64,000 bases of DNA from Trichoplax adhaerens (lineage: Eukaryota > Animalia > Placozoa). The notes under the pieces are model-generated. The model was not told the DNA's origin and made no database searches. It saw nothing but the letters and a program-made list of their open reading frames with translations. Positions within the stretch are counted from its first letter, which is position 1, and each line of letters begins with the position of its first letter. The DNA lies in assembly GCF_000150275.1 (NCBI RefSeq), contig NW_002060943.1, positions 2,694,462 to 2,758,461 of the forward strand. Reading direction: 5' to 3'. The position numbers and the translations under genes are program-made. Shown one piece after another: positions 43,730-62,411 of this stretch.

Positions 43730-45649
43730 TTATTCCATCAAAAGGGTTTCTTTATCGCATCTTGCCTTTCGAAGGATGTCATAAATTTTATCCTTAACAA
43801 CTTGCAGTAACCTTTTGTTTTTGAATGTGTGCATTTCCGCCGCTACATATTGGCCGAATGAGTCAATATGGTCCATTTGAATTACTTTTGGAAGGTAATA
43901 TTGTATGTTTGCGTCTTTTACGTTAGGAAATGATTGGCAAGCTTCCTGTTGATCATCAACATTTGTAGTAGGTAAGGATAGTCTTTTCCTCTTCATAGTT
44001 ACTCCACATGGCTTTTCGAGTCCGTTTACTATGCCAATAGAATTGTCCTAATTCCAACATAATTTAAAATTTAAATTTGCAATGGTCATAAATAAACCGT
44101 AATTTAAGTTGCGCATAGTGTCCTTACATTACATGCAATGCTATGATTATTTTCTGGCCCTTCGCTAAAGGAATTATTACTTTCTTCCATGCTTTTCTAC
44201 AGATTTATATGGCATAATTCATGATGATGCTCATTAATTAAACTATTTTAATTATTTGAAAATAAAATTTATCATATGCAATATTAAATATAGGGCTAAG
44301 GTAGTGGCTAGGATTTATGCTTGCTTACCAAAGTATTAATTGAACAGGATTGGACAGGAATATTGAGGGAACAATCCTCTAAGTCTTTCTACAATTTTGA
44401 ATTGAATACATTGCATCATTCACATATACTACCGGAGTTCGTTAACAGTTAATTATTAATTTTCATACCTTAACACCTTTTTCCGTTTCGGTCTAAAAAA
44501 TTAAATGTGTAAACTTAATGTTCTGCAAGATTACAAAATTTAGGAATAGTCTATCTTAGAGTTTTAGCATGATAAAATCGCTCTACTACTGATGGATAGA
44601 ATTCAGTGTTCCAAGGCATTAGCAAATTTTGAAATAGTATACCCTATCTTACAGTTTAGCATGATAGAATCGCTCTATTGTTACTGATTGATAGAATTTG
44701 ATGTCTTATACAGTTACCAAATCTTTTAACAGTATACTCTATCTTAGAATTTTAGCGTGATTACATCACGCTACTGTTCCTGATTGATATAATCAAATAA
44801 AATCTACGCGATTAACAAATCTAGTATAAGTATACTCCTGTCTTAGGCTTGTAGCACGAAAGATTCGTTCTACTGTTACTGATTGGTAGCATTTAGCGTT
44901 CTATACGATTAATTAATCTTGAAATAGTATCTCGTAATTTGTAGATTTCGAGCACTGTTAATAGGGACTACATGATAGAATCACTTTACCGCTACTGGCG
45001 GATAAAATTGAGTGTTTTACACAATTAACAAATCTTGAAATAGTACATCGTAATCTGCAGATTTAGAACCTTTGTTAACAGTAACTACAATGAGATATAA
45101 TCGCTTTACTCTTACTAGCTATTAGAAATTTGTGCTATACACGATTAAATTATCCTGAAATAGTACACCAATAGATTAGGTTGATAGCATGATAAAATTG
45201 CTTTACTGTTAGTAGTTGGTAGAACGCTATGTTCTACTTGATTTACAAGTCTTGCAATGATGTGCTGCTAGGTAGGTTGTTAGGCTATGACAGAATTGAC
45301 TTACTTTTACTGATTGACAGAACTCGGTAAGAAATTCCAATTCTTTATAATATTGCCAATCGGATGTTGAGGGATTGCCATCTTCGATACCATATTGATC
45401 AGCTAACAAGAGTTTTCGGCGTTCACGATAAAATTTCAGACGTAAAGTATGACATTTTCTTTCTATTTCACTTTGACTTATGTTTAGTTTAGTCCCAATA
45501 TCAGCCCAAGTATGTTTTCTATTTTCTCGATCAGTGTAGGAAGGATGCTTTAAATCCCATAGATGCGGCTGCTCGCGAAAATCATGTATTAACTTCAATG
45601 TTAAATCTGGTGTCCATGCTACACAGGTGTTTAGATCAACTTCGGCCAT
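43730..45649 (-). CDS. MADF (Myb/SANT-like Adf-1) domain transcription factor with C-terminal BESS-like motif, 5 exons, ~271 aa
   Basis: Exons 45305-45649 (WTPDLTLKLIHDFREQPHLWD...RKHTWADIG...LRLKFYRE...WQYYKELEFL), 44469-44492, 44329-44388, 44128-44196 and 43730-44047 (DSFGQYVAAEMHTFKNKRLLQVVKDKIYDIL). All introns are phase 0, GT-AG. Confidence 0.85.
44550..45225. repeat. Degenerate ~90-bp minisatellite (~7 units) in MADF intron 1
   Basis: Recurrent tagcatgata(a/g)aatcgct..actgat.gataga..aaatcttgaaatagta unit. Confidence 0.8.
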
Positions 45650-52500: not shown

Positions 52501-54822
52501 TTAAATAGCAATTTTTCGTTCCATCGTATCAGATCTGTAAATAAGCTAGAATTATCTAATATGAAATAGGCTTGTACCATATATATTCAATCATGCTAAC
52601 TTATTTAACAGGTGTCGTTAACCTTTGCTCGTCGAGGGAATCCAAGCACGCAATTACCTATTATAAGAATTGAATAAAAATTAGCTCTTATTGTATGTTG
52701 CATTTACTATTATCAAGCATTAAATGTAGCCTGCCTTCTTCAGAGATAGCCTTATAGATGGTCGCTCTTGCAAACACCCAAAAGCTAAATTCTGTAGCGT
52801 TTTTTCAATATTATATGGCCAGTGAGCGTAGGGATCACGAGGAAATACACATTTATTCTCCTCACATACTCGGTAATACTGGACCTGAAGTATGAATAAG
52901 TAACTGTCTGATTACTAAAGAGTATCGAGTTTAGACGACAAAGTAAGACCAACATTAGCATTCGTTAAAGCAATATGATATCTTTAATATAATTAAACCA
53001 TTCAACTTATCATGTTTGATGAAAATATGTAGTCTTTTTTACATTTATAAACTAGACTTACCAGAGTTTGAAACCCTTGAAAAGGAGATAAATAAGGCCG
53101 GCCGGATAGAACTTCTAGCAGTACCTGCAATAATAATTTTCATTCACATCTTTTTAATCAAGAAGGACAGATCATGTCTTTAAAATTAGATTATACTCAT
53201 GTATTAAGAACAAATTTAGCTGCGGCTCCTATTAATAGCAATTGATACTAGTAACTTACAGATCCAAAGCCATAGACGTCATATCCTAGGGTTATTTCAC
53301 CGCGAAAAGCTTCAGGTGGTATTCGAGTATAGCCAAGACTGCCTTGTAAAATAGCAATCTCATCATCGAATTGATTTCTAGGAATGCGCGCCTTGGTTAA
53401 TTTTGATTGATCGAACTTGCCAATTTTAGCCACATAGTGGGAATCGAGTAGGATATTTTCTGTTCTGATATCGCCGTGAATTAATGACTTCAGGAAGGCA
53501 GAATGAAGATATTGAATTCCTTGAGCAGTCCCAAGGCAAATTTGCAGCCTATACCAGCAATTTAATTGCGGATTCTGCAATATATAAATAAATGATATCA
53601 TTTTAAGCCTATATATCCATCTAATGCTTTAAATGAACCATCGATCTTTTTTTACTGTTTCGAACCTGATCTTGTAAGTGTTGGCATAAATTGCCATTTT
53701 CTACGTATTCCATAATGTAGCATAGCTGATTGTCGATTTCAACACATTGATGAAACTGAATAACATTGCGATGCTTATATCTATCAAATTAATAAAGTGT
53801 AGTTATGGCTGTTTAGCGATCTGCTAAAAATAGAACCATTCTTTTGAATTCATATTTAATAACTAGTGTCTAACTTCAAAAATCTTAAACATTTCATGGG
53901 ATTTAGTGCTGAGCAATAAAGATATGATCATCGGACTAGTTGAATTAAAGCATTTACTTCAATTGTATTTGATTTAAAGAGCTTAGACTTTTCGTGAAAT
54001 GGAATGGTTACTAATATGTAATGCTTAATGATATAGTACTAACCGACGAAGAAATTGACTTTCTTTGGCGGCATTAACGGAAACCTGTATCGATATGATT
54101 AGATATTAATCAATGTGCAATGCTGTGATACTGAAATTGAGGCTGTAATATTATGAAGATAAACGACCTTCTCTTAAACTTAAAAAGCATTGCAGTACGG
54201 TAACGAAGATTAATTTACAAAGTAATTTAATACATTTCGCTAAGAAAATCTGGCAAGGAACGAATATTATCCTCGAAGATATAAGCGATACCGCTAGTTT
54301 ACAACTGCTTACGTTATATTTTGTCATTCTCTTAATGGCTACACGACCATATGCGCGAATTTGACACAGATAGATTTCACTAAATGTGCCTTGATTAACT
54401 CGATGTTTCGGAGCAAAGTTATTCGTTTGTTGGATAATCTCCTGTTGTGGTAGTCAATCAAGTAGTTTAAACGAAAATTAATTCTGGATAAAAAGGGATT
54501 GAAATTCACGAAGATCAGATTGCATAAGTACGGTACTTCTGAAATGATCGATAGAAAAAAAATACATTTTACCTGGACAGTATCCAAGTTTGCTCGCTTG
54601 ATTTTACTTAGGCGCTGATCAAAGGCAAAGTGATGATATTAATATAATTACATTAAATGTGATTGGCTATTTATCTTTAATTTCACTGGCATGGATTATA
54701 TGTAATCTTCTTATCCTATCCACCAGTTAAATATTTTAATTCTTTCTAGTTCCTACCATTTCTTTTCTTTTTTCATATATATTGATCACTTCCGTTTTCC
54801 AACAAGAGAACAAGCATCCCAT
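52501..54822 (-). CDS. N-myristoylated IRAK/Pelle/RLCK-like pseudokinase K2 (HGD/KFD)
   Basis: Exons 54790-54822 (MGCLFSCWKTE), 54573-54614, 54313-54441 (QTNNF..NQGTFSEIY..VAIK), 54044-54084, 53666-53780, 53260-53574 (IHGDIRTENILLD..AKIGKFD..PPE..DVYGFG), 53062-53124, 52735-52884, 52623-52657 and 52501-52534. Confidence 0.82.
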
Positions 54823-57800
54823 TTCCTTTTCGTTGGGAAAGATTAATTGTAAGAATACTAATTTCTAGAGTTCCTTCAAGAACTAATTTGGTTAGTTTGC
54901 TTTAAGCAGAGTTGCGAATGAATATCGCCGATCGCGTATAAAAGATTATTGAAATAATTTACTCTAGCGCATAGAACTTAAACGCTTTCTGCTACTCTTT
55001 GAACTATCTTACACGAACATTACCAGCCCATGCGCTGTTTCCAAAACTAATATAAATGAATGCTTTCCATCTTACTATCAATCCCTTAAATAATTTTGAG
55101 GTTATATAATGTAAGGTCATTACCAAACGGAATGTAGTCTTATATTAGCTTTAGCAGCAATCTTCAGCTTCATAGACTCTTTATATCATAAGAAAAGAAT
55201 TGTACTACCAACTCTTGGCATGAGGTACTTTGTTGTGATGACACGTTGCTAAGTAGCATCAATTCCTCGATGTAGCAAAGTATTCTTGCACACCTAGGTG
55301 TCTTTGCTATCATTCATTCCATCAGTTACTCATGGGACTTGCATTAAAAAATAACAATACTAAAGAGCTAAATATAACATTATAATTTACAATTTGTTGA
55401 TCGCGATCATATCAAAATCTTTCTATTACATCTCTTTACTAATGTTGATGCACGTCATCCGTGAATGGGGCCCATTTTATTTGTCAAGAAGCGTAATCTT
55501 TGCTGACGGTTACATCATATCTACCTGTACTCCAAATTTATTAATATTTTCCTCAGTTCTGTTTCTTTAATTCTATTGGAATTGAATGTACTAATAACTA
55601 CTTTCATTACTGCATGAACACGATTTTGGGAACTTTTTATTCAAATGTATTTGTTTAAGCAATAACATTAAGGCAAGATTTAAATTAATACTCAAGATGC
55701 ATCATTACCCTTTATCGATGACGTCCGGTTTAAATTAATTATGTTTACATACAATACATAAGAGATACAAATTTATATAGTTGGACTATATTACGTAAAT
55801 ACTGTCGTTAAGGCGTCTCATAACGAATGAACTTTTGTTAGATAATAATAAGTTTCGATTCAATAGTCAACAAACATGTTAAAAAAATTTTTTGGCTTGA
55901 ACAGACTTACATATATATGTTAACATATTATTACCTCTGTAACGTAATTAATGGTTAGACATACATGTATTATAAAAATTTTCTGATCAATTTATCTTGC
56001 TGTTGAAAGTAAATGGGTAAAAATTAGCAATTTCTTGCAGCTGGTTGGGCTAGCTTCAACAAATAAATTCTTAGTTTATGCTAAGTAAGAATGTTAGCAG
56101 CTACGTTTATTTCATTTTGGGGAAAAGAATAATTGATTTGAATAATTAGATAGAGTTTCAGATTATTAATGACCGCTATAATTCTGTTGGATGAGACTGT
56201 AATAGAGATTGCAATTTTACTGTAACATTAGAATGAAGGAAGCAAAGTTACTAAGTAGATCAATGCCGGTGTATTAATGTGAATGATTACTTACAAAAAT
56301 TAAATTGCTCTGGCATAGATATTCATTTTTCGGTTGTATTATTCATCAATCTGTTTGAAATAAAAGTAACCTATGAGTGTAAAAGATACAAAGATTCTTT
56401 TAATCAATAAAAGAAATTTAATATTCATTTTATCAGATAAAGTTTACATGCAATAGGCATATACAATCTTTAATTTTGAATTCTACTAAAATATCTGATA
56501 CTAAATTTATTAAACCTTTGCATCAACAAATGGCCATTAGGTACGAGAAGTAGCCTAAAATTTGACTCGCTTGTCCACAGGATTTGTAACATTTAATCTA
56601 ATATAGAATAGTTTAAAATATTGCCAAGAGCTAGTGTTAATAATCAATTTAGTACCTGTCACAGAAACTCAGAAATCATACTGCGAGAGCACAAAAGCTC
56701 TTACCTACGAAAATTGCTTCCTATATTATGTATCATGTTTATACCGTGCCATTTTACTACGACATTGCCTAAATTAAGTAGTTCCGTTTCGTAAAATATC
56801 CAAGACTACTTTGAAGTTGTTTTAAGTGCAATCTTGATAAGTAAAACTGCCAAACGAGTTTTTTATTTCCATCATTCATATTGTAATATTAAAATTTTTT
56901 TATTTACTTACTGCATTAAAGGCAATTACGATACGATTAAGATACTTTTAACATAAATTCGATGGAATGTTACAGGTATAAGTATGATTTTATCATTACT
57001 GTTTAATTTTGGATTGAGATTGTCTAGAATAGATTCTTCTAATTCATCATGATTTGCCTGCTTCTTAAAGTTTTATCTTTAATTAGAAATATTTTATCCT
57101 AAAGCATATCAATTTCCTACTTAAAATTTAAAGCTAACTATCGATATCATCAACTATCATCAATGTCGTTTCAATCAGAAGAATTGGCGCTTAAGCATTA
57201 TTACAATTTTAAATTATATTAAAATTATATCTGATCGATCTCGTTTATGCTCTAATTTTAGATTCTTGCAATAAAACAAAATTCCTATCCTGTTCATCAA
57301 TCAACTAACATAAATGTTAAACTTATACAGCAACTTTAATGAATTTGTTGATTCGATTGGTTCTGTTACTATCAGCTCAATTTTTTTGGTTGTACTTATT
57401 TTTTTTAAAGATTAACAATAAGTAAAACAATTTTCTACCTCTTTATGGGCAGTCTCTAGTTGAAAGGTTTTAGTTTACAAGGGCGATATGGAGTGAGTGA
57501 TACAGCAAATATTTGATCATAATGATAGCTATATTTGATTGTGTTGGTAGCGATATTTGATATAGTTAAAGTTTCTAAGAATAGGTATTATCGTAGTGCT
57601 AATATTAGATTGCTAATTACTATATTATAAATTGGTGACGACTAGTATTAGCCAGTTGACTTGTTATGGTACAGTATTTATGTGACATGATATACTGTTG
57701 TTATGAAGATACCTAACACCGAAAGATACTGCACATTAATAGAAGAGTTGTGATATTTCAAGCAGATTGATTCAGATTGTAGGAGATGATGATGATCTAT

Positions 57801-60020
57801 TTAAGCAAAGTTATTCTGTTTGATGACTAAAGTCTGATTGTAGCTAATTATGTTATCGTACATGGATTTAACGAAATGTGTTTAAGAACTACGGAGATGA
57901 GCTTACGTTAGAGGTTTGACTTAACTTTGAGCTCAGAATATTTCATACTAGATTCATGAAGCAATCAATTATTGCTCTACTATCCCTAAACGTTATAATT
58001 GTGATGGAGGGTTCGATATCTCGGAGGATTGAGATTTAGTTGCCACTAACAATTAGTACACTAAAGGTTGCTTAAAAATTATACTTTATTTTAAGTAGTA
58101 AATTAAGTACAGTGAGGTAGTTACGGTAGATCAACGTGCAAGCTGCCGTGAGTAACATGTGAAGCCTAACCAGGAAACTAACGATTTTTGAGGTGGAAAT
58201 TAGCGGTATGTATAGTTTTAAAGATAGAGCACATGCAAAGAATAGGATTGTAGAATTAGATACAACATGTACCATAACAGGTTACAACATAGCTGATGAT
58301 CATAGCAAGCAGCGAGTACTGTAATACTAAATACAGTAGCCTATATATGAATGTGAAGTAAGCGGAATGTAAATATGTCTAAATATAAGAGCAATACAAC
58401 AAGTCTATATTTAAGGGTAGAATATAGTTACAGCATGTTCTAAATACACTACAATAATAAAGTCTTTATAGAAAATTTCATTTGACTACGACACTTTATT
58501 TGTGAGATACTTTTATTACACCACGCCAATTATTATGAGTATCTATCCTACCTCTTGTTAATAATGAAATCATTGTAGGGGTTCAAATTTCAAAATTATA
58601 CCGTAAGTAATCGTCTTTCTGAGCGCTGGTTAGAGTACTGTGCTAATAGTTTAATACTAACATGTTAGATTATTCTTACTCAATCCGACTGTCAACAATC
58701 TGGTTAAAAGACATGATCGGAATGTATGCTTTTATAAGAGTCTTAATCAATTTTACCCATATTGGGCTGGTCTTTAATAGCTCTTATGACATCATATGAC
58801 TGACATGTGCTAAGTTGAATATACTCATATAGAAATCATTCTAAAATTTCATCCGTATAAATAAACTGCTTTGTTTAAAATAAGGTATTAAAGCCTCACT
58901 ACTAGGCTAGTGCAGTTGGTATTTATGAAAATACAAGGATCTTTGACTGTTGGTATCTGTAACTACGTTTAAATCTCCATCTCAAAGAATACTGAACTAA
59001 ATTTCTTATTTCCCCAAATCTAGTACACTTGACTGCACGACTAATTGATATTCAACTGTAAGTACAAAGATTGTAAAGAGGACCAATAAGTAAATCAAAG
59101 TACTATCTGAATACAACAGTATACTGCAATTAATGAATCTTTAAAAGGTGTCGTTAGTTCGATTAAATCTAAATTATGTTGACTAGATATGTAACCTCTA
59201 CCGATAGTTTTCATACGATAACTTGAATAGGTAAATGCTGATATCATCTTGTATGCTTCAATAGATAACTGCATACTTTTGCAGAACCATCTAAATACTG
59301 ATGGAAATTTTTTGCGCAGATTCATTATAAGTTGACTGATTTGTAATATAGTTTCGGTTAATAGTATAGTCTGAGGAAATACATGTAGTGCACTGTGATG
59401 TCTTGATGATGGGAGATTATCAGAAAGAGAGCCATACCGTAGGTAAAATTCGGAAGGACAGTCCTGATAATGGGCTTATAGTATATATTTCCTTCCACAA
59501 TTCTAATTTTTTTGTTATGAGTTTGTAATGACCACTTTCAAGATAGCCTAAAGATCAGTATAATAGTGTAGATAACTATGCAGCATTACAGCATAGAGAA
59601 CTTATGTTATTACTCATTATTTACGACAATCATTATTCCATATGGTTGGCTAACCTCATAAACATAACTCCTCGTTTACTTTCAGTTACCCTCTATTCAC
59701 CTAATTAGTCTTCCAGTCATTCCTTTATATGGTTAAACGATCAATTTGAAGTCATAGTTTAATTTAATTTTAATATTTTTTTCTTAGCTATATTAGCTGA
59801 ACTTATGTTAAAAATATTTCAAGAGTTGAGAAAGCAATTTTTTACTTATAACTACATTATTTTAAAATAGTTGTACACATGTTTTATCGTAGGGCTGCAT
59901 TTTTATCGTTAGCTTCGTTGCAGTATTGGGTGCATAATCTATAGATTTTTTTTTTTGGAAAGACCGAATTTGATAGCATATTTAGAGTATATTGGAGTAT
60001 TGTGTCGAATAGTAAAAAGA

Positions 60021-62411
60021 ATGGGAGGTATTTGTTCGTGCCGTAAGAATGAGGTAATTAATTAGTAGAACATTGCTGATTATTTCTTGGATAGTTGTTA
60101 GTTGAAAATGATCATTATTGTTGGTACATAAAGTAATTCCTTTATTAATTGACTTTGACATATCAATTTTATTTTAATTTCAACCTATGATTTAACCTAA
60201 CTAAGTATGGTAATATGAATGTATATATATGAATTATAATAATAAGGAGCAACTACTGAGGGCGGAGTCTTACCTTGGAAACCCCAATCTTGAGATACAA
60301 GCTGAGGTAAATTATTCTGTCACTAGTTAATTATGGGACTATCACAGACTTCTCTTTTGATAAAGGATAAAGTAGAGTATTCAGCTCTTCTTAGTTGCTA
60401 TTGTCAAATTTATTTTAGTATATAGGCAGAAATCTACTACGACACAAATTTTTAATGTACTTTACTATTCATCAATCAAGATACATTTACAATGTGACGA
60501 AGACACTATTTGAACGAGTCCTTTACAAGTCATTAAGGATGGATTATTAGTATAACAAAATGTTAGAAGGAAGTCTTTATTTTTAATAATTGCTAATTAT
60601 TCTAGGATATAAAAATGGCAACAAATAATTTCTCGGCTGAGAATAGAATTGGTGCAGGCGCCTTTGGTGAAGTTTATCAAGCTGATCTGCACTCATTTGG
60701 CGTTGTTGCGGTTAAACGAATTAAGCAAAAATTTGTAAGTAAGTTTTTAACGGCATTACAATAGCGTATTTACTAGTTTTTTATGCAGTCAAGGCAATTA
60801 TGATGCAGATCAATTTCATTAATTTATCTATTTTTGACGATTCATTTAATATGTATCTCGATGATACGTTACAAATATGGTGGTAAAAGATATCAGTAAA
60901 TGATCGACGAGAATGTCAGCTTCTATTTCAGTAAGTAGCAACTACTTGTGTGTTTTTCCGCATCGTATTAATGAATTTAAGATGGATTATAGATGAAAGA
61001 TTGCGATAATAATCGTTTACTTCTAGATATACACATATTAATCTCATACAGTTGCATACCGGCTTGGTTGTTGATGGCCACTTTTGCATGGTGATGGAGT
61101 TTATGATCAATGGCAGTTTAAGATCAAGATTGCAAGCGAAGGTATGCTGATTCAATAAAAGTCCGGTTCTTCATTTGAGTAATTTCTTATTTCTAGGTTA
61201 ATGTAACTTCTATTAATGACCGTATTATGATATTGTAGTTGTACTAAAGTCAGAAATTTAGAATAGAATTGACAACAATTACATAAAAAATTTTGTAATA
61301 ATCAATTACTTCATCGATACAAGCAAATAATTCGTACTCGAATTTAGCGAATTATAATTGCTAAATATCTATAAATTTCAGGATGAAAATCTGAATTATT
61401 TAGTCAGATTACGAATTTGTAGAGGCATAGCCAATGGAATCAATTATCTCCATTCAGCATTTAGGACATATCTTGTGCATAGGGACATTAAGAGTGATAA
61501 CGTATTGCTTTCGGAAGATTACACTCCTAAAATATGTGATTTTGGCCTAGTAAAAATTTTCTCTTCAAAAAGGAATAATAATGTTAATAGTGCTGCCATG
61601 ACTGAAAATATATGCGGAACTCAAGCTTACTTACCCCCAGAAGCATTTGATGGAATAATATCACGGCGTCTTGATGTGTATAGTTATGGAACTGTACGTG
61701 CAGTATATTGATTTAGCAATGCATTAATAAATTTGCAGAGGCTCATAATTGAGATTGCTCTTTATCCCGAAGGTATTACTGGAGATTATATCAGGGAAAT
61801 CACCGCTCTTTAGTAATAAAGAAGGAATTCCATATTTGGTAAATCTATATTTATGCAGTATTTTAAGGCCATCTTACCAGCAGCATGGATGCACTTATAA
61901 TACTCGTATTATACACGAACCGATATTATTTTTAGATTCAACTACAAGATATTTCGAGATTAATTTAATGATTGATGCTTATGTTAGTTCGATTACAGAC
62001 TTAACTGGCTAATTTCCATCAGATATAGTTTTCTTTATAAATTACAATGATGAACGAATTTAGATATGACATATTATTATGGTAAATTGACTATCTCACA
62101 CTGCTGACGATACCCTGTTTATCATTAAAAATCGCTACTAGGCGGACTACTTTCTCTACTGTTACATACACCAAATATCAGCCTTTCCTATCGATAAAAA
62201 GGCCAACTGGCCTAAAGATTATACAAAGGAATTAATGAAGCTAGCCAATTGGTGTCTAAGACATAAATATGAAGATCGACCATATATGAAGGAGGTTAGT
62301 AGGGAGACTATCCAAGGTTTGATTTTGCCGTAATGATTACTAGATGAGCTTATATTATCTATTTATAAGGTGATTGAAAAGCTTTCAGAAATCGCTTCTA
62401 AGACAAAATGA
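60021..62411 (+). CDS. N-myristoylated IRAK/Pelle/RLCK-like active RD kinase K3
   Basis: Exons 60021-60053 ([11 protein letters not shown]), 60247-60306, 60606-60734 ([25 protein letters not shown]), 60890-60930, 61027-61141, 61382-61693 ([30 protein letters not shown]), 61773-61838, 62142-62294 and 62370-62411. Confidence 0.88.

Follow-up and report, generated by a model that had tools for sequence, protein, structure and literature searches.

A Met-Gly/Cys first exon in a six-gene subfamily of clustered, death-domain-less IRAK-like kinases of Trichoplax adhaerens, with a putative maintained pseudokinase

How do IRAK-like kinases that lack a death domain reach their receptors? Kamm et al. 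(2019; PMC6321704) described several such genes in Trichoplax, tightly clustered in the genome, and left receptor recruitment of these placozoan kinases unanswered; their text makes no mention of myristoylation, palmitoylation or pseudokinases. The question is raised again by a stretch of 64,000 nucleotides of Trichoplax adhaerens scaffold DNA (hereafter the window; positions 2694462-2758461 of its contig; host assembly 105.6 Mb in 1414 contigs, ~31% GC), which carries two divergent kinase genes, K2 on the minus strand and K3 on the plus strand, whose start codons point away from each other with 5198 bp between them. A preliminary description had regarded the two as a co-regulated active/inactive pair, possibly a sensor and an executor or an inhibitor pair, with a lipid-anchor signal in each first exon. 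We consider it likely that they belong to a placozoan-specific tandem cluster of death-domain-less kinases of the IRAK/Pelle/RLK type, in which a subfamily of six genes has an exon for dual acylation, K3 being a competent kinase and K2 a retained pseudokinase. Genes and cluster alike are in the public record already, and the anchor signal is visible in the deposited protein sequences; the literature that we searched contained no paper naming these genes and none linking placozoan IRAK-like kinases to lipidation.

K3 is TRIADDRAFT_51558 (XP_002107747.1) of T. adhaerens, located on a 13.26-Mb scaffold and 100% identical to K3 exon 6 in a protein search, and its orthologue in Trichoplax sp. H2 is RDD38101.1. 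Our model of K3 has nine exons of 33/60/129/41/115/312/66/153/42 nt, corresponding to 316 codons, with AG/GT at all boundaries. The exons are as follows (window coordinates).

60021..60053, plus strand: K3 exon 1, 33 nt, with ATG, Gly2, Cys5, Ser6, Cys7 and basic residues 8-9, ending in Glu and followed by GT; predicted myristoylation and palmitoylation signal
60247..60306, plus strand: K3 exon 2, a 60-nt phase-0 linker with a homologous linker exon in all six paralogues
60606..60734, plus strand: K3 exon 3, 129 nt, with the N-terminal extension motif, an intact Gly-rich loop and the beta3 Lys
60890..60930, plus strand: K3 exon 4, 41 nt, with the alpha-C helix Glu; left out of both public K3 models
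61027..61141, plus strand: K3 exon 5, 115 nt, beta4-beta5 and hinge
61382..61693, plus strand: K3 exon 6, 312 nt, with HRD catalytic loop and DFG intact
61773-61838, 62142-62294 and 62370-62411 (stop codon included), plus strand: K3 exons 7-9, whose C-terminus agrees with the H2 model RDD38101.1

Exon 1 encodes the opening residues of both public models, XP_002107747.1 and RDD38101.1. Further downstream, both splice exon 3 to an AG inside exon 5 (gap at window 60735-61053), so that exon 4 (41 nt) and the opening 27 nt of exon 5, and hence the alpha-C helix, are missing, and in Pfam their kinase match does not begin before profile position 70. AG/GT boundaries flank the 41-nt exon in K3, K2, two further paralogues (P12 and P16, introduced below) and an environmental relative, and the exon is encoded in the public models of the paralogues P13 and P15. 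Its omission from the public K3 models is probably an annotation error, and we took the exon as part of K3.

K2 likewise has nine exons, of 33/42/129/41/115/315/63/150/57 nt (314 codons), and its boundaries are AG/GT save for one GC donor.

54790..54822, minus strand: K2 exon 1, 33 nt, with ATG, Gly2, Cys3, Ser6 and Cys7, ending in Glu and followed by GT; predicted myristoylation and palmitoylation signal; the H2 model starts here
54573..54614, minus strand: K2 exon 2, a 42-nt phase-0 linker
54313..54441, minus strand: K2 exon 3, 129 nt, with a degraded Gly-rich loop (first and third Gly gone) and the beta3 Lys kept
54044..54084, minus strand: K2 exon 4, 41 nt, alpha-C Glu kept
53666..53780, minus strand: K2 exon 5, 115 nt
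53260..53574, minus strand: K2 exon 6, 315 nt, with HRD changed to HGD, the catalytic-loop Lys to Arg and DFG to KFD
53124-53062, 52884-52735 (GC donor) and 52657-52601 (stop codon included), minus strand: K2 exons 7-9; the H2 model has the same stop codon

The GC donor of intron 8 lies at window 52733-52734; the alternative to its use is read-through to a stop codon five codons on.

The two first exons translate as the preliminary description had stated, each being 33 nt long with a terminal Glu codon and a following GT. The equal sizes that it had noted for the 129-, 41- and 115-nt exons extend to their phases, and the remaining exons also correspond, with identical intron phases across all nine matching exons and a protein identity of about 35-43% per exon. 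Judged by this gene structure and a protein identity of roughly 40%, K2 appears to be a diverged paralogue that arose from an old inverted duplication. No inverted repeat is left at the DNA level between K2 and K3, and therefore the duplication that had been proposed stands on exon structure and protein identity, its nucleotide trace having gone.

The kinase domains belong to the IRAK/Pelle/RLK superfamily in the TKL group, as indicated by structure, homologue and Pfam matches. Against solved structures, the paralogue model P0152 matched the IRAK4 kinase best (1.4e-39), followed by plant CERK1, BRI1, BAK1, PBL2 and BIK1 and by human IRAK1; outside placozoans, homologues fall to 33-40% identity and comprise plant RLK-Pelle kinases and animal IRAK4. 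True IRAKs and Pelle bind MyD88 or Tube through a death domain at the N-terminus. Pfam detected Pkinase (1e-52) as the sole domain of the complete paralogue models P0152 and P0154, with no death domain, and in K2 and K3 the kinase region has only about 31 residues in front of it. In a tree of exon 6 (103 columns, midpoint root, with inadequate rooting and sampling), three plant sequences stood next to the placozoan clade with support of 86/90.

Four closer paralogues of K3 lie just past the end of the window on the same scaffold, namely, P12 and P13 (plus strand) and P15 and P16 (minus strand), and together with K2 and K3 they make up a K3-lineage subfamily of six genes within the tandem cluster. 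The cluster is an alternation of two gene types, the K3 type and a second, more degraded pseudokinase type, in the following order: K1 (second type) and K2 on the minus strand, K3 on the plus strand, K4 (second type) on the minus strand, P12 on the plus strand, a gene of the second type on the minus strand, P13 on the plus strand, a further two genes of the second type and, lastly, P15 and P16, both on the minus strand. In all six members of the subfamily, an open frame of 30-36 nt initiated by ATGGG, which has a Cys among residues 3-9 and is followed by a GT donor, was found 320-550 nt upstream of the 129-nt exon, and a phase-0 linker exon 2 of 42-66 nt comes next in every one of them. To judge how often such a frame occurs, we used a loose pattern (ATGGG, a 30-36 nt open frame, Cys in residues 3-9, then GT) on both strands of 306 kb. 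It occurred 10 times, and six of these occurrences are at the expected sites upstream of the six paralogues; on this count, the placement of the Met-Gly exons exceeds chance. The Met-Gly/Cys signal is, by its distribution in the sequences, a trait of the six-gene subfamily and not peculiar to the K2/K3 pair.

A shared first exon can direct N-terminal lipidation only if translation starts there, and a further coding exon upstream would make the Gly internal. We consider it quite improbable that the 5' ends of our models are wrong in this way. The models are genome-based, and elsewhere the public models of K3 are demonstrably mis-spliced, through omission of the 41-nt exon. However, each of the six start codons is preceded, 1-36 codons upstream, by an in-frame stop with no in-frame ATG between, no AG acceptor is found immediately upstream of the K2 or K3 ATG, and ATGGG is invariant. 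All six starts have a purine at -3, and the Trichoplax sp. H2 models of K2, K3, P12, P13 and P15 begin exactly at the Met-Gly ATG, the P16 model alone being truncated. A short conserved motif, as expected near a promoter, is also common to four paralogues 20-45 nt upstream of the ATG and is a candidate core-promoter or 5' untranslated region element; it lies at the following positions.

59976-60000 of the window: upstream motif, first of four paralogues
L012:4540-4565: upstream motif, second paralogue
L013:5800-5830: upstream motif, third paralogue
L016:8455-8480: upstream motif, fourth paralogue

Given a true start, K2 and K3 both carry Gly2, Ser6 and an adjacent Cys and fit the N-myristoylation pattern, in agreement with the MGxxxS signal with nearby Cys described for them earlier. 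PROSITE PS00008, a short and permissive pattern that requires Gly2 behind the initiator Met, admits certain residues at position 3 and small ones at position 6, and forbids Pro at position 7, is satisfied by five of the six N-termini (K2, K3, P12, P13 and P15). Gly2 does not vary among the six paralogues despite their divergence, Ser or Ala occupies position 6 in five of them, and Cys occurs at positions 3-9 in all six and is followed by basic residues, which is the classic layout for dual acylation. Ser6, Cys7 and Lys9 are kept between paralogues despite synonymous codon changes. On the strength of this short pattern and its conservation, the six proteins are predicted to be N-myristoylated and S-palmitoylated.

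Several observations weigh against this prediction. P16 has Val at position 6 and fails PS00008. N-Myristoyltransferase (PF01233, PF02799) was not detected in the genome, although all control genomes were equally blank, which makes this result uninformative. Exact look-up of the complete public models yielded nothing but genome contigs, all models being genome-based predictions, and no near-identical transcript-derived protein was among the matches of the K3 protein search. The T. adhaerens and Trichoplax sp. H2 sequences are 99.87% identical over 13.9 kb, a comparison with no power to reveal conservation of exon 1. An ENA metagenome scaffold of 1741 bp (L022), presumably from another placozoan, codes for a kinase of the K3 type, 63% identical, in which the 129/41/115-nt exon structure recurs; the scaffold covers exons 3-6 and the last part of exon 2 and ends before exon 1. 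A scan of JGI metagenomes gave nothing above 40% identity. In these searches, no more distant placozoan sequence reached exon 1.

Some of these points bear on a reading in which the Met-Gly exon is the true start and is not lipidated, the Cys-rich N-terminus having another purpose or matching the pattern fortuitously. The permissiveness of PS00008, the failure of P16 and the undetected transferase speak for it, whereas the invariant Gly2, the small residue at position 6 in five genes and the Cys followed by basic residues speak against it; moreover, N-myristoyltransferase is to our knowledge universal in eukaryotes. We hold this reading to be improbable and prefer dual acylation.

The second pseudokinase type was also considered as a bearer of the Met-Gly start, and this was rejected: K4 starts with Met-Gly-Glu, and two paralogues of this type start otherwise. 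The first exons of two second-type pseudokinases (L012:3130-3180, minus strand, just past the window end; L014:3604-3657, minus strand) have a run of three Cys right before the donor, which may be a palmitoylation-only anchor.

Does the subfamily contain both active and inactive kinases? In K3, P12, P13, P15 and P16, the Gly-rich loop, HRD and DFG are intact, as are the beta3 Lys, the alpha-C Glu and the Lys and Asn of the catalytic loop, and K3 looks catalytically competent by the state of these motifs. In K2, the beta3 Lys and the Asp of HxD remain, as does the alpha-C Glu, and the sequence is altered to HGD, a catalytic-loop Arg and KFD, with the first and third glycines of the Gly-rich loop lost. 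A kinase that lacks one or more of three residues, namely, the beta3 Lys, the HRD Asp and the DFG Asp, counts as a pseudokinase; with its DFG Asp replaced, K2 is a pseudokinase by sequence. In the exon-6 tree, it falls within the clade of the placozoan cluster (support 95/93), and its branch has a length of 1.78, the median being 0.3. This long branch, the lost DFG Asp and Gly-loop glycines and the GC donor in intron 8 are features that a decaying pseudogene would also have. Nevertheless, its nine exons are open, its splice sites are usable, its structural residues are conserved and the H2 genome annotation includes it as a gene; given the composition of its introns, a frame staying open for 314 codons would have a probability of about 1e-12, and its exons are richer in GC (0.40) than its introns (0.285). 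That K2 is a decaying pseudogene is therefore highly unlikely in our view, and we read it as a maintained pseudokinase, a coding gene that would have lost canonical catalysis.

The active and inactive states assigned to K3 and K2 in the preliminary description thus agree with the intact motifs of the one and the sequence definition applied to the other; that the two form a special functional pair does not follow. The region between them contains the following features.

54823..60020: K2/K3 spacer, 5198 bp between the start codons, with no annotated gene
about 57496-57999 and 57993-58461: dispersed repeats in the spacer, adjacent and together about 1 kb

The first repeat (~500 bp) has several genomic copies at 76-79% identity and the second (~465 bp) at least 30 at 82-92% identity; no tRNA or Rfam match was found in the window, including the spacer. 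A dedicated K2/K3 pair would consist of a pseudokinase sensor, decoy or inhibitor and an active partner, driven by a shared divergent promoter and held at the same membrane. The two genes are indeed adjacent and divergent, both have the anchor signal, one looks active and the other degraded, and pseudokinases of the IRAK family and of plant RLCKs are known regulators. Elsewhere in the cluster, active-type plus-strand genes are also head-to-head with pseudokinase genes, with spacers of 1407 bp (K4 and P12) and 2621 bp (the next pair). However, these partners are of the other pseudokinase type, which has no conserved Met-Gly start, and the anchor is common to six genes, so that it does not single out K2 and K3. 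Starts that share a bidirectional promoter diverge within about 1 kb, and the K2/K3 spacer of 5198 bp, with about 1 kb of dispersed repeats, is not such a compact promoter. Tandem and inverted duplication suffices to explain the adjacency of K2 and K3. The co-regulated sensor-executor or inhibitor pair is thus left unsupported, and we regard a dedicated pair as unlikely.

The head-to-head arrangements of a second-type pseudokinase with an active K3-type gene (L012:3180-4588 and L104:18702-21324), at 1.4 and 2.6 kb, are far tighter than that of K2 and K3 and may represent a duplicated two-gene unit. On other scaffolds, L018:5142-5447 and L019:4271-4570 are more distant IRAK-like genes whose catalytic motifs are degraded too, one having a replaced HRD and DYG and the other (L019:4271-4570) HRN; a candidate Met-Gly/Cys mini-exon lies 1.3 kb upstream of the L019 gene. 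At window 45227-45649 (minus strand), an intron-less open reading frame of 140 codons encodes a MADF (Myb/SANT-like) DNA-binding domain (Pfam 3.7e-18).

How, then, might the six kinases reach a membrane? Removal of the initiator Met would expose Gly2 for N-myristoylation, and the neighbouring Cys would then be S-palmitoylated by DHHC enzymes; the genome has 18 exon-level matches to DHHC (PF01529), most of them over the curated cut-off. The N-terminal tether of about 31 residues would hold the kinase domain permanently at the membrane, as in the SH4 domains of Src-family kinases and in plant RLCKs, and the anchor would replace the death-domain recruitment of true IRAKs. Forced membrane tethering suffices to activate Drosophila Pelle, and a constitutive anchor could therefore substitute for recruitment through a death domain.

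A broader reading, which we put forward tentatively as a possibility, is that the placozoan death-domain-less IRAK-family kinases are permanently lipid-anchored, receptor-proximal kinases with pseudokinase partners, the animal counterpart of the plant RLCK module. If true, this would explain downstream signalling of the Toll/IL-1 type in an animal without canonical TLRs or death-domain IRAKs, and it might mirror the ancestral state of RLK/Pelle kinases, prior to acquisition of the death domain. For the question of receptor recruitment, the subfamily-wide dual-acylation signal offers a concrete and cheaply testable answer, namely, membrane tethering in place of Myddosome assembly. The analysis also corrects the public K3 gene models and points to K2 as a maintained pseudokinase paralogue.

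Among known systems, the architectural parallel with plant RLCKs (RLCK-VII/PBL kinases such as PBS1 and BIK1, and CRPK1-like proteins) is striking, as is the difference from death-domain IRAKs, in line with the earlier remark that such anchoring is typical of plant RLCK-VII kinases and not of animal IRAKs. Both groups have a kinase domain of the RLK/Pelle type with neither ectodomain nor death domain, a short Met-Gly N-terminus with nearby Cys for myristoylation and palmitoylation (predicted in Trichoplax), and expanded gene clusters with pseudokinases among their members. N-terminal myristoylation and palmitoylation tether most plant RLCKs (PMC10317173). The plant CRPK1-like proteins recovered in the K3 homologue search also begin with Met-Gly and a nearby Cys. 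The Trichoplax genes are, however, animal genes, and the single-exon tree is too short for reliable rooting or orthology; the Trichoplax anchor may well be convergent with that of the plant RLCKs.

With animal IRAK4, IRAK1 and Pelle, the subfamily shares its kinase domain, IRAK4 being the closest solved one, and the N-terminal extension motif before the Gly-rich loop. The IRAK family itself combines active kinases with pseudokinases (IRAK2 and IRAK3). The subfamily differs from these proteins in having a lipid-anchor signal in place of the death domain, and recruitment to the Myddosome via MyD88 is therefore not possible in the known way. The SH4 domains of the Src-family kinases Lck, Fyn and Lyn and the N-terminus of G-alpha-i have Met-Gly-Cys or Met-Gly-x-x-Cys-Ser followed by basic residues, and this dual-acylation layout recurs in the subfamily, K2 and P15 being particularly alike; by contrast, the Trichoplax catalytic domain is of the TKL/IRAK type and not a Src-type tyrosine kinase, and SH3 and SH2 domains are absent. 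Finally, K2 resembles in its sequence the pseudokinase regulators IRAK3 and plant ZED1 and RKS1, in that it keeps the fold and the beta3 Lys without the DFG Asp and Gly-loop glycines.

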